Origin: Syncephalis fuscata S228
Taxonomy: Eukaryota; Fungi; Zoopagomycota
DNA length: 64,000 nt
Direction of reading: 5' to 3'
NCBI GenBank assembly: GCA_025786725.1
Contig: JAHLTZ010000001.1
Coordinates: forward strand, 744,001 to 808,000
Shown here: in pieces, positions 40,256 to 56,212 of the stretch
How the letters are laid out: each line of letters opens with the position of its first letter
Position numbering within the stretch: position 1 is the stretch's first letter
Notes under the pieces: generated by a model
Seen by the model: only the letters and a program-made list of their open reading frames with translations
Databases searched by the model: none
Told to the model about the DNA's origin: nothing
Position numbers and translations under genes: made by a program

Positions 40256-43200
40256 TTACAAGTCCCAACCTTCGACGTGGAATGCTTTTACATAGCCGAG
40301 GTATCGAGCAACTAGACGCTGTATCGGTAGGGATAGATTCATCGATACAAGCATGTTCTTTACTTTCGACATGCCATGAGTGCGTACTAGTCGGTTAAGG
40401 GCATGCGTAATAGGCATTGGATAGGAAACCTCGTTGTACTGGCTATCGTGGTAGATGGCCAGCTGCACTATTACTTCTAATGCTTTAAGGGCATCGCCTG
40501 TATCAATATACAGCTCAAGTAGACGGGTCCACGCTTGGAGGGAGAATTTATTGCGTAGACAGCGAACGTACGCTTCACGTGCCGCATCCTAAAAGAACAA
40601 TCAATCAATAAACTATAGTATATATATACATATACATATATAGATATGGTCTATTTAGTCTACCTTATGATGAAGTCTCAATGCCAAATCTCCTAATGCT
40701 TCCCAATCAGCGGCTGAACGTAAATAGGGAACATTCTCTTCTTTATGGCGGGCCATTTCCATTTGCCAGGCGGCATAAGCACGTAGATCCTAGACCAACA
40801 CAATATTAGTCACTAAATATATAGATATTTATGGTATTTACCTCATACAACACCATAAACAAATTATCAAGCCAACTGATATATTGGAATTCATTAATAT
40901 ATATATATAACTATAACCGATAGACAACTATTTATTACTTACCGTTCACAAAGACGCTTGCTACTTAATGGACCACCTGCTTGATTAACCGTCTTTAATT
41001 GATCTGCCACATCGATCTAATAAATATAAACACCAATATAAATAACACGTCCTATAATGGATATCTTTATTAATAACCAACCTTATTCGACTTTTCCTTG
41101 GTATTTCCATCATTATCCTCTTCGTCCAATGGTCCTTCTGCGGCTCCTTTTGGTCGTTTAATCAAAGACTCGGTCGATCGGCTTGTTTCTAATAATAGTA
41201 ATAAGTATACATATAAATTGCACAGTATTTACATTTCCACTATTTACCTATTGATTTACCAGTGGTTACAACATTCTCTAAAGTAATAGCTAGATGAGCA
41301 TGGTTGTTGTTATTATTATTAATAAGCTGCTTACTATTGTCATGTTCACCATCATTCCTAGTTGTCTCTTTAGTATCTTGTTCAGTATCTGTATTTTCTG
41401 GTGTAAGATCGATATCTTGTGATACTTGTAAAGTAGCCACAGGTGTCGATAATTGTTCATTGGCCGTTTCTGGTGATGTTGCGGCTGATTCAAGCGGCAC
41501 CTCTTCCATATCTTCATTACTACTTTTATTGTCGTCATTCAAAGTTGTCGTCGTTTTCGTTTCTACTTTCTCTGTGTCTTCTTTTACTGGTTCTTCAGTC
41601 TTTGTAGTTATTCCTGCCCCGTTATCTGTTACTGTATCTTTTCCCTTTTCTGGTGCATTATCCGATGCAGCCATCATAACAGTAACATCTCCACGCTCTT
41701 CATGTTTAATCATGCGATATTCGTCTTCCATAACAAATACCGATGAGCGTGAATGGAGTAATTCCTCCCATCCAATCTTAAATGCTAGTTGTGTCAACAT
41801 GCCGTAAGCACGAGCAAATGTACCACGAAGCATAGATGCTGGTAAGCGTTGTGATGGTTCTTGCTATATCCATATAATGTATAAATATATTTAATTAACC
41901 ATGTCCATATATATATATATATGTATTATTTAATACTTACTGTAGCAAGTGGTTCCATATCATCGTCATTTCCTTCAGTCAATGCATCAGGCTTTGTAAT
42001 CGCATGCGCACGTGCAGGTGTTGGTGCACGAGGCAGATCACGATCTGTAAAAGTAAACATTGGACAGCTATTCATGGTTAAAAGTGCCTATATAATATTT
42101 ATTATTAATCCATGTATATTATAATATGTATTAAACTAACCGCTTTAAAATTGCCCAAATCCGTGTAGATTTCCGTCAATTTGGCCCATGTAACAAATTC
42201 TGATGGAGCACAATTAACTGCTCGTTTAGCCAATTGACACGCCAATTCATATTTGCCCTTAATATTATATTCAATATTAATTAGTTGTTACTTAATGTAC
42301 TGTATTATTTACCTTTGTTCTTAAAAAGTCCACTTGAATATGTAATAGTGAATAACTTGATGGTTTCTTTAATAGAGCATCATGAAGTACTTGAACACCT
42401 CGAATCTCCTCATCTATAATACAGCCATAATAGTAATTGGCATTAATATGTTTCTTGTTATGCTATTATCTCTTCTACTTACCCATACCAATGTATGCCT
42501 CTGCCAATAATGAACCAGCCTCTGGATCCTTGTTAAATAGTAATCAAGCATGATTATGGTTAAGAATTAATACATAAACAACTCCATAATAGATTTGTAT
42601 ATTTATAAAGGATATGTTGTTCAAATGCCTTGACTGCTACATGATATCGGCCACTTTGACTGAAATACTTCATTAATCCACTGGTCAAATGATTTCGACT
42701 ATTAGTGGCAATTTGTATTTCTGCCTCTGTTCCTAATTGCCATCCTATCTCATATAGCGTTAATATTACATTCACGTCTATTCTGACGATAACTACCTTT
42801 ATGATACAATTGCGCTGTTACATCTAGAAATCGCTGTTCTGAATCCATAGTAGGAATGGGATCAAATCGACGGAAACCCGATAATCGATATTGATAATCA
42901 TCCGAGTAGAGGATGGCTCGTAACAAGGCCGACATATAAGTCTCTGACCATAATTCTGGTGTTGTTTCTTGACTATATACCAATAGTAATGATTAGTCTA
43001 GCTCTTTATATTTATTATGGTTATTGTTGTTGTTCTACTTACCGGCGACCATATGAATCAATCATAAAACATTCTACACTGCCGGGAATCTTTACAATAA
43101 CGCGCATATCAACACGTGAAAATGCATTGTAACAACTATTGAACAAATAAATACAAAGTGTTACTGGACGGCTATTAGAAGGACTAGCGCCACTATAATG

Positions 43201-43713
43201 ATATCTACCAGTAAACAGCTGAAGTAATACGCCATTGAGAATTAGATTTGCCAAACCAGCCTTGTTGTTCATTCTATATAGAATAAACGTTACTTAATAT
43301 CTATATCCATTCATTATTACATAGTCACTACTTACCTGTGAATAAGTAAGCGTATTGATATAGGCAGCTAGACTGGCCATAGTAGAGGCATCCACGCCTG
43401 ATACATGATGATAAGAGCCAAGTGAGATCTATACAACATTTATTATATTATATATAACGAGTTCAATCCATTAAAGTACACCATTTCTACCTACTTCTTG
43501 ACCTTCTTTGCCCTGTTTCTTAGTTAGATGGCATAGGTCAGGTGGGCCCAATTCACGGAAACTGCCTATTAATATCAATAGATTCATTGTTTAGCATTGA
43601 ATATTGGTTGGTTATTACGCGCCATACTTACCAATGGCATCTGTACGCGCAATAACCGATTCTCCTAACACCGATTCAAAGAATTCGGGAACATCTTTAA
43701 GGGCGTCCGACAT
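40256..43713 (-). CDS. BCH1: ChAPs family exomer cargo adaptor (Bch1/Bud7/Chs6-like), many exons including one U12-type intron
   Basis: FRELGPPDLCHL, GSYHHVSGVDASTMASLAAYINTL, CYNAFSRVDMRVIVKIPGSV, WSETYMSALLRA, APSEFVTWAKL, ALLTMNSCPMFT, LRGTFARAYGMLT..IGWEELL, KRLCERWLDNLFMVLYEDLR. Confidence 0.93.
42540..42615 (-). other. U12-type (minor spliceosome) AT-AC intron, 76 nt
   Basis: 5' splice site ATATCCTTT, branch site TTCTTAAC about 20 nt from the 3' end, terminal AC; removal gives in-frame AFEQ-L-FNKDPEAGSLL and deletes the stop at 42560. Confidence 0.9.
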
Positions 43714-50300: not shown

Positions 50301-51656
50301 GAATTGCTACTTCATCTTCTGGTTGTAGTTTTAAAATAGTTTCATAGCCTTCAATAGCCTATAATAAGTATTGTAAACATCAATATATACATATACATAT
50401 ATAATAGTTACCCGTTGTATTCTACCTGCTTCCATATAGACTTCACAACGTGCATGTAAAAGACCAATATCCTTTGGTTGGAGTGATAGTGCTCGCGTGT
50501 AACAATGGACAGCATGCATAGGATTATTACGCTTTCTACTCATATACACATGCATATTCATATTCATGGGTTAATATATACCATTTATACTATAACTGTA
50601 ATTTACCGTAACTGTTCTGCTACCCAGCACCATAAATCAGGATCACGGGCATTTTGTGCAGCACAGAATCGTAAAACAAATGCTCGTTCCTCTTCACCTT
50701 GGTTTTCTTTAATAAGTGCCAGTAATAACCAGGCATGTTCTACTTGAGGGGCCAGTCTAATAGCTTCATTCAAATAAGGAATGGCGTCTGTTTCACGATC
50801 TCCAACATATAAACTATTTGCCTGTTGCAATAGATTCTTTACTTGGAGTGGAATGGCCGTGGTGGTTTGTCGTGTACCTGGTTGACGCTACATTATAATT
50901 TTATATTTATATTAATAAAACATTAGTATATAATATATAATATATAATAACTTACGGCTTGTCGAAGTCGTGCCGTCCAATACCACTGGCCTGACGTAGA
51001 TTATTATGAAATTCGGCCATATCTGCTTTAAAATCCTGTTGCATTTCTGTCTGAATTGTTTGCCTAATGGACCACCCTCTTGTTGCATTTCCATAGCTGC
51101 TTTTTGAGCATCTTGCATGTATTTTCTATTAATCATATATTAATATAATATATTATAATATAATATAATTTAATTTAATTTAGTTACATCTCGTTTTAAC
51201 TTACGCAAATTCTTGTTCTTCAGGCATTTCTGTGTCTTCATTTTCATTTAAATTATGTCTCTTTGTCTTTACTGTCGCTTTACCCGCTGTTGCTGTTGCT
51301 GTAGATTCTTCATCCGTACCTGATCCTGATTCTTCGCCACCATAATCTAGTTCATCCATATCTGCTGCCAATAATTCTTCATAGTCTGTCTGGTCATATT
51401 GTCCAAAGTCGGTCATATAATCATTTACAGTGGCCGTTGTAGCTATATCTGCATAATTGTGTGGTGCTAGTTCAGATGCTGTCCACTCGGTATCGCCACC
51501 GACCACACCGGGTGGCTGTGCGTAACTATCATGCATCGACACGTCTTCATAGCCATTTTGATTGACTGGACCTAGATCTAAACCCAACGGTAAAGACGAG
51601 TCATCGCCGGCCAATAGACGAAGAAAGTACCCGTCTGATGCTGATTCCTCATTCAT
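47328..51656 (-). CDS. TFC4: RNA polymerase III transcription factor TFIIIC subunit Tfc4/GTF3C3 (TPR protein, many exons)
   Basis: Acidic N-terminus; ANSLYV..EAIRLAP TPRs; LPIDLRVKLGVCRL; HRAMQRKTENRH; AYNLGRAFQHIGL; DAAYNLSLIY..G..AQHLL C-terminus. Confidence 0.9.
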
Positions 51657-53925: not shown

Positions 53926-56212
53926 ATGGAAACGGAATTGAATACAGAACGTAATGCTACTTGCACGCCATCTAATACTGTTCAATCTACAGTAGAGAAT
54001 GCTTCGGAACAAGCTAAAGCAACAAAATGCATTACGAGTCCGTTAGCTGATTGCCGTGATGCTTCAACAAGTGCCACGGCAGTATCAAATCGCATGGTTC
54101 ATTCCCGTGAGGTGGAACATAAATTGCGACAGTTAATGAGTCATTTTCCTAGATGTAAATTCCATTTACATGGATTACCACAGAATATGACACAAAAACT
54201 ATCCAATTATTTAGAGGCCAATTCTGCAGTAAGTTATTGACGATAATAGTAACAATATACAGTAATTATTAACATGCCAACTTATTCATTAGCAAGTGGA
54301 CTCTTTCTTCTCAGCGGATGTTACCCATTTAATTGTTAAAGATGAAGCATTTGAACGAACAAAAATGGAAATTGAACAACAGGCGAGGTAAGTATTGGTG
54401 TGATATTCAAGTCTTTAAATCTATACAATATCCATTAATATTGCCAATATTAATTGATTGACACTATATATGTATTCAGGTACAACATGATCTTACTATC
54501 AAGAATGCGTTTCTACACAAAATGCGTGTATGGCCTTTAAACAGTAGGTTGCCTACAAACACTACTATCGAGCATTACTAATATATATATATATATATTA
54601 ATAGAACTAAAAAGATTATTTATCATATTAACTTGTTTAAAAATCCAAAACCCAGTAATTCTCCGTATAATGGCGATCTGGCCAGTCAATTGCGCAATGA
54701 AACAATTTACGGCCCATCTGGACAACAACACGACATTTACTACTTTCCCGATCATTATTGTTATTTGTTAATAGAAGATTTAACAGGACAACACCGACCA
54801 CCTATTGTAGAAAAGTATCCATTGCCACGTGAAAATCAAGAACCAGTATGGCCTAAATTAATGTGTGGTTCTTCGAATCGCAGTCCTTTCCTTAAGTTAA
54901 AGGATACGCCAACAGAAAGACCACCCTTAACTGCAATTGCATTGGCTGGGAATGCTACAACATCACGTGCTCTAGTTGATGGTCCATCAGCACGTAGATC
55001 TACTCTACTAGCACAATCAGCACAACAAGGCATCAGCCATTACAATCACGGGCTGCATCATTACTGTCGGCAATGAATCGTAATGATACACCGACAACAA
55101 CAGCATTGCGGTCTAAATTAGTTAGACCAGTACAACGACAACGATCAAATGGATCAACTCAAGAAGTATCGGTAGCATCGGGTATGCATCCATCCGCCAC
55201 AGCTACTATCCTCTCTACACCTTCATTGTCAACAGCCACGTCTACTCAACAACCACATGCACCTTTTCCACCATCGAAGGCGGTTGAGCGATTGAATCGT
55301 CGTGCATTGGCTACGTTAGAAGAGAATGGTGTTCAATACAGCAATGGTGGTGATCGTGGTATAAAGAAACTATCCACGGGACTGAATAAACCCGCAGTCG
55401 TGGTACCAACTACGGTTAATCGTTTGAGCGTTTATAAAGATCAGGAGAATGCTCAACAACAACAGGCATTAGCAATTGCTGCCACTCTTTCCACAAAGAA
55501 TGAAGGTTCATTACTGGTAAAGACGGCGCGTGCTAATAATAATAGTCCATCGTTTTCATCAATGCCACGTCGTCCTGGTTACTGTGAATCTTGTAAGACG
55601 AAGTTTGAACATCTTGCTGAGGTAATTAACTAGTAATATTTGTAATACATACTAACAGTATTATATTTATATTTATATTTATATTAGCATGGACAAACTC
55701 AAAAACATCGTAGATTTGCATTGAATATAAGTAATTGGAATTCAGTTGATAGTTTATTGGCAGAGATGGAGAATGATGCACTACTAGTATCAACTGTTCA
55801 AAAGAAAAAAGTTGTACATGAAGTGTTTGATCTTGAAAATTTACAAGAGCTAGAAGAGGAGGAAGAGGAAGAACTCGAAGAGGAAGAGGAAGAGGAGTAT
55901 GAAGATGAAGATGACTACGAAGAGGAAGAGGAAGAGGAAGAAGAGTATGAAGATGAAGATGAAACTACATCAGCACCTTGTTCACCTTCACCTTCTACTA
56001 ATGTTACTTCAGCAGATGATGTTTCTACAGATGCAGAACACGAAGTAATACAACTTGGTTTTACGCCACACACTGTTAACAACACTGACGAGAAAGGAAT
56101 AACAACGCCATGTATACCGTCAACTAATACGACAATCGCTGACAATAATGCAAGTTCAGATACGGAACGGCCCGCTTCCATTGTAAAACGTCGCCGATTA
56201 AGTGCCGTTTAA
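53926..56212 (+). CDS. DBF4: Dbf4/Dfp1 regulatory subunit of Cdc7 kinase (multi-exon; apparent frameshifts near 54608 and 55027)
   Basis: Motif N (FPRCKFHL..FFSADVTHLIV), motif M (YLLIEDLTGQHRP), motif C zinc finger (PGYCESCKTKFEHLAEH....HRRFA), acidic tail. Confidence 0.88.

Follow-up and report, generated by a model that had tools for sequence, protein, structure and literature searches.

A 76-nt AT-AC sequence that is very probably a real U12-type intron interrupts the ChAP (Chs5-Arf1-binding protein family) gene of the mold parasite Syncephalis fuscata. The best explanation of this interruption (intron 7), and one that can be held with high confidence, is a genuine U12-dependent AT-AC intron, inherited from an ancestor at least as old as the one shared by the Zoopagomycota, Mucoromycota, and Dikarya. 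The original prediction of a U12-type AT-AC intron in the ChAPs gene is borne out in its core by the collinearity with orthologs, by the junction in the public S. fuscata protein, and by six orthologous AT-AC introns. The gene is located within the window (the whole stretch of DNA that was analyzed, 64,000 nucleotides in length), and the features needed for the analysis are listed below in window positions.

40256..43713, minus strand: ChAP gene, 18 exons and 17 introns
42745..42796, minus strand: intron 6, GT-AG, phase 1, position common to Dikarya
42616..42744, minus strand: exon 7 (exon A), ChAPs profile positions 146-194
42615..42540, minus strand: intron 7, AT-AC, 76 nt, phase 1, within codon Leu237
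42607..42615, minus strand: minor 5' splice site ATATCCTTT, matching /ATATCCTT and complementary to the 5' end AAAAAGGGG of the U11 candidate
42559..42566, minus strand: probable branch site TTCTTAAC, one mismatch versus TCCTTAAC
42540..42541, minus strand: AC 3' terminus of intron 7
42483..42539, minus strand: exon 8 (exon B), filling ChAPs profile positions 195-211
42414..42482, minus strand: intron 8, GT-AG (GTAAGT...TAG), phase 1, position common to Dikarya
40258..40256, minus strand: stop codon of the ChAP gene, taken from the open reading frame list

The identity of the gene is based on the PF09295 (ChAPs) profile, for which eight exon matches scored above the cut-off, all within one gene and covering profile positions 4-395. 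A whole-genome search with the same profile showed that the ChAP gene is single-copy in the S. fuscata genome and that only profile positions 195-211 were left unmatched, which is the slot of the small exon B. The exons were searched singly and compared with the orthologs exon by exon, without a joined spliced model. The public S. fuscata protein (P0151, NCBI, 787 aa) maps onto the locus in 18 blocks from 43713 to 40259 with zero mismatches, and its public name agrees with the ChAP family. A PDB sequence search with the exon A peptide returned no relative of solved structure, and a 22-residue read around exon B returned no Pfam match, the latter because the query is too short.

The sequence of the minus strand across intron 7 is GCA TTT GAA CAA C|ATATCCTTT ... 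TTCTTAAC + 19 nt ... TTAC|TA TTT AAC AAG GAT CCA GAG. Exon 7 ends with ...VAVKAFEQ and a C that forms the first base of a split Leu codon, and exon 8 supplies the remaining TA, FNKDPEAGSLLAEAYIGM, and the first base of an Asp codon. Full-length orthologs from the profile-library search were aligned to the two exons separately, and the end of exon A falls one residue before the start of exon B in Tulasnella, Neolecta, Dipodascopsis, and other orthologs. AT-AC splicing gives a gap-free match to the orthologs (KAFEQ-L-FNKDPEAGSLLAEAYIGM-D-EEIRGVQ in S. fuscata versus, e.g., NLFEK-L-HAKEPEVASLLAQAYIGM-N-EEVKGVQ in an ortholog) and the Leu that is rebuilt from C and TA is conserved, as in FEK-L. 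The same junction is already used in P0151, which reads AFEQ-L-FNKDPE. A search of the protein collection for transcript-derived S. fuscata fragments across the junction returned none.

The coordinates 42540-42615, the exact minor donor, the AC end, and the absence of a polypyrimidine tract were all predicted exactly. An in-frame TAA, which had been expected to be removed by splicing, is located at 42562..42560 within intron 7 (in the frame of exon A), and the open reading frame 42560..42775 stops there. The candidate branch A is positioned 20-21 nt from the AC end of the intron, close to the upper limit of what is usual, and phase 1 is the phase favored by minor introns. A comparison of the gene with P0151 shows that 16 out of 17 introns are GT-AG and that intron 7 is the sole AT-AC intron, so that the expectation of GT-AG termini elsewhere holds for all 16 remaining introns of the gene.

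The donor motif ATATCCTT alone occurs four times in the 64-kb window, compared with 3.93 expected occurrences, and chance alone would give ∼0.34 compound motifs of donor, branch box, and AC/AG terminus (all within 150 nt) per 64 kb. These counts are near the chance level and the motifs by themselves are therefore no evidence for an intron; the evidence is their placement at exon boundaries that are defined by homology. That the putative splice signals sit exactly on both of these protein-homology boundaries is significant. A second compound motif in the window (54907..54829, minus strand) runs antisense within a plus-strand open reading frame and was taken as a chance match, and a further compound motif of donor and branch box is found at 50467-50732 on the plus strand.

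A strict pattern (ATATCCTT, 25-55 nt, TYCTTRAY, 6-20 nt, AC) was matched 36 times genome-wide and twice in the reversed control, where the 36 matches include overlapping variants and duplicates on near-identical contigs. Identical or near-identical AT-AC candidates were found on the contig pairs C46/C334, C14/C339, C24/C359, C305/C370, and C85/C279, which suggests that the assembly contains haplotigs or duplicated contigs and thus that the raw counts of the strict motif are inflated. The excess of 36 over 2 matches supports a genuine population of AT-AC introns in S. fuscata.

A working minor spliceosome had been implied by the original prediction, and the genome encodes components of it. U11 was identified with 47.5 bits, above the Rfam cut-off, and carries the 5' end AAAAAGGGG and an Sm site. 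U6atac was likewise identified above the Rfam cut-off (37.8 bits, C315:4451-4610) and contains the AAGGAGAGA box. A full-length U12 candidate (C157:67826-67997, corresponding to L001:1501-1672) retains an intact Sm site as well as the GUAAGGA box for pairing with the branch site; its score of 34.6 bits versus an Rfam gathering score of 53 is due to two insertions of ∼20 nt each, and default Rfam annotation would consequently miss U12. The branch site TTCTTAAC could pair with the GUAAGGA box of this candidate through one predicted G-U pair. No U4atac was accepted with the Rfam model RF00618, either at default settings or at E<=10, and none was found with two patterns of complementarity to U6atac, which are weak blanks because the patterns were built on the human U4atac/U6atac pairing. 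A 21-bit U4atac match (C309:130080-130157) was rejected, as it has no complementarity to the U6atac of the genome and lacks 60 model positions.

Among minor-specific proteins, PDCD7/59K (PF16021) was recovered through a C-terminal exon (29.2 bits, cut-off 27) and is the sole such protein detected. CCDC84/CENATAC (PF14968) gave no match in the genome in an insensitive search that was unvalidated by its controls. Overall, the proposed search for minor snRNAs succeeded for U11 and U6atac, yielded a candidate below the cut-off for U12, and failed for U4atac, and the presence of a minor spliceosome is upheld by U11, the U12 candidate, U6atac, and PDCD7 together with the genome-wide excess of compound motifs.

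Minor introns are absent from the Dikarya but present in the Zoopagomycota and Glomeromycota (Larue and Roy 2023, PMC10639083); they make up 0.554% of introns in Basidiobolus and number 205 in Rhizophagus (PMC10639083). Syncephalis is absent from the main text and one supplement of that survey (PMC10639083). In the proposed comparison of intron positions among ChAPs orthologs, the genomic loci of six other genes each showed an AT-AC intron that matches intron 7 in both site and phase.

S. plumigaleata, L013 2581-2656 (GCA_025201365.1 JAIXMF010000008.1): 76 nt, box TCCTTGAC, 12 nt from the end
Environmental (metagenome) relative, 73% identical, L024 1182-1251: 70 nt, box ACCTTGAC
Basidiobolus meristosporus paralog 1, L020: ∼67 nt, box TCATTAAC
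Basidiobolus meristosporus paralog 2, L021: ∼73 nt, box TCCTTAAC
Rhizophagus irregularis, L022: ∼77 nt, box TCCTTAAT
Phycomyces blakesleeanus, L023 1655-1792: ∼135 nt, box TTCCTTAAC, 22 nt from the end

All six aligned orthologous introns begin with the same donor, ATATCCTT, while their interiors cannot be aligned. The Phycomyces blakesleeanus intron contains a long T-rich run after TTCCTTAAC, an unusual feature in a minor intron. The Dikarya were represented by three intron-bearing members (Tulasnella, Neolecta, and Dipodascopsis), in each of which exons A and B are fused while both flanking introns are kept in place. Introns 6 and 8 of S. fuscata (both GT-AG) have counterparts of identical position and phase in orthologs from the Basidiomycota and Ascomycota (L014, L017, and L019), which makes these two major-intron positions very old as well. 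Introns are lacking from the ChAP sequence recovered for Dispira, for a contig encoding a protein that groups with one from Tilletia, and for one further contig.

The AT-AC introns at the same site, combined with the absence of the intron from sampled Dikarya that keep the neighboring introns, place the intron in the ancestor of the Zoopagomycota, Mucoromycota, and Dikarya. A lineage-specific gain or a retention had been left as alternatives by the original prediction; judged from intron position, the ChAP minor intron is an ancestral retention that disappeared from the sampled Dikarya, and the option of a gain falls away. An origin before the early fungal ancestor is possible, given that the ChAP protein itself is inferred for LECA (PMC6057913).

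The intron in S. fuscata resembles the U12 introns of Rhizophagus irregularis and Basidiobolus meristosporus (PMC10639083) in its ATATCCTT donor, TCCTTAAC-like box, and AC terminus, and also in being short, in phase 1, without a pyrimidine tract, and hosted by a genome with minor snRNAs. The ChAP orthologs of these two species carry the same intron as S. fuscata. The branch box of S. fuscata differs in having one mismatch and in its distance from the end, 20-21 nt compared with 12 nt in the sister species. The shorter distance of 12 nt is shared by the two closest relatives (L013:2638-2656 and L024:1232-1251), and where these relatives have their branch box, S. fuscata shows no more than a degenerate GCTTGAT, located 5 nt before the intron end (window 42541-42566). 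This comparison suggests a shift of the branch site, with turnover within one genus.

A conventional GT-AG intron at 42640..42529 (donor CAT|GTAGCA, acceptor AACAAG|), with the U12 signals as a coincidence, was considered as an alternative to the AT-AC intron. Both dinucleotides are present and in frame, the compound motif has the chance frequency given above, and exactly the 12-residue deletion that such an intron would cause is seen in the public model of S. pseudoplumigaleata, with a similar deletion of 9 residues in the Jimgerdemannia model. However, the 12 residues (VAVKAFEQLFNK) are conserved: all well-modeled orthologs retain them, including the FEK-L motif, and in the sampled Dikarya without the intron they are encoded contiguously. 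The public S. fuscata model also uses the AT-AC junction rather than the GT-AG alternative, and ATATCCTT is invariant at the exact site in seven genes from three subphyla, which makes a conventional intron highly improbable. A further alternative accepts the AT-AC intron as real but assigns its removal to the major (U2-type) spliceosome, as is the case for a minority of AT-AC introns in animals, and U4atac was found neither with the Rfam model nor with the two patterns. In U2-type AT-AC introns the donor is major-like (e.g., ATAAGT) and a pyrimidine tract is present, whereas intron 7 combines the exact minor donor ATATCCTT with a U12-type branch box and has no pyrimidine tract. U11, the U12 candidate, U6atac, and PDCD7 are present in the genome, and the sampled Dikarya, a group without a minor spliceosome, lost exactly intron 7 and kept its neighbors; removal by the major spliceosome can be regarded as extremely improbable.

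A different question is whether the intron was kept because slow or regulated minor splicing (with the in-frame TAA) limits the output of ChAP and the exomer and thereby the delivery of chitin synthase and other cargo; the rate-limiting control on cell-wall export suggested by the original prediction finds no support in this analysis. Points in favor are the very long conservation of intron 7, the truncation of the ChAP protein that retention would cause, the presence of Chs5 with a probable exomer, and the enrichment of minor-intron genes in Rhizophagus for vesicle-mediated transport (PMC10639083, Table 3). On the other hand, the survey favors neutral persistence and reports no proliferation-linked regulation of minor splicing in Rhizophagus (PMC10639083), the sampled Dikarya and Dispira live without intron 7, and conservation of position is expected of any retained ancestral intron. 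A regulatory cause of retention is thus unlikely. The same low probability is given to the combined proposal that the intron predates the Fungi and that inefficient U12 splicing or stop-containing retention tunes ChAP and exomer output; if true, the site would serve as an intron marker of LECA age and as a conserved point of post-transcriptional control over cargo export from the TGN to the surface. A special regulatory role is not needed to explain intron 7, which looks like one of a few dozen to a few hundred ancestral minor introns that are still kept.

The genuine U12-dependent intron remains the preferred reading, and its most likely mode of removal can be outlined from sequence complementarity and the established model of the minor spliceosome. 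The 5' end AAAAAGGGG of U11 would pair with the donor ATATCCTTT, and the GUAAGGA box of U12 would pair with TTCTTAAC through one G-U pair, leaving the branch adenosine bulged. U6atac, with its AAGGAGAGA box, would then take over from U11, and excision would join 42616 to 42539, rebuild the conserved Leu codon (C + TA), and drop the in-frame TAA. We infer both the removal by the minor spliceosome in vivo and the identity of the branch adenosine from the sequence.

The public gene models of three relatives are wrong at this junction. The S. plumigaleata protein (P0001) reads into the AT-AC intron (TAT ATC CTT, translated as YIL; FEQ-YILTVMIV...), which results in an 8-residue insert, and then splices a GT-AG pair inside the AT-AC intron with the loss of the conserved KD of LFSKDPD. 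Protein comparisons show that 12 residues in S. pseudoplumigaleata (P0275) and 9 residues in Jimgerdemannia flammicorona (P0284) are missing exactly at the junction, and both deletions probably represent a GT-AG model that was forced across a predicted AT-AC intron. The warning that standard gene finders would mis-model the intron is thus justified for these three relatives but not for S. fuscata itself, where the public model is correct. The three wrong public models indicate that gene finding restricted to GT-AG introns damages conserved residues in early-diverging fungi.

By its PF09295 match across the gene, the S. fuscata ChAP is a predicted counterpart of the exomer cargo adaptors Bch1, Bud7, Chs6, and Bch2 of S. 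cerevisiae. The CHS5_N domain (Chs5 N-terminal domain) is encoded in the S. fuscata genome with a score of 54.2 bits, and the presence of this partner domain makes an exomer plausible, so that S. fuscata probably has one. Fungi outside the Saccharomycotina contain a single ChAP gene (PMC6057913), and the single-copy ChAP of S. fuscata, together with the Chs5 partner domain, resembles this pre-duplication ChAP of other fungi (PMC6057913). The description of the adaptor as largely fungal was mistaken, as ChAP is pan-eukaryotic, with an inferred presence in LECA, and Chs5 alone is specific to the Fungi (PMC6057913).

Minor introns were already documented in the Zoopagomycota, and the general knowledge of fungal minor splicing is unchanged by this analysis; new here are the positional comparison of seven genes for the ChAP intron and the identification of mis-annotated relatives. 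The ChAP gene offers a clean and well-dated ancestral minor intron, found at one site across the Zoopagomycota, Glomeromycotina, and Mucoromycotina, and its loss in the three sampled Dikarya illustrates how the loss of the minor spliceosome proceeded through intron deletion and not through conversion to the major type.
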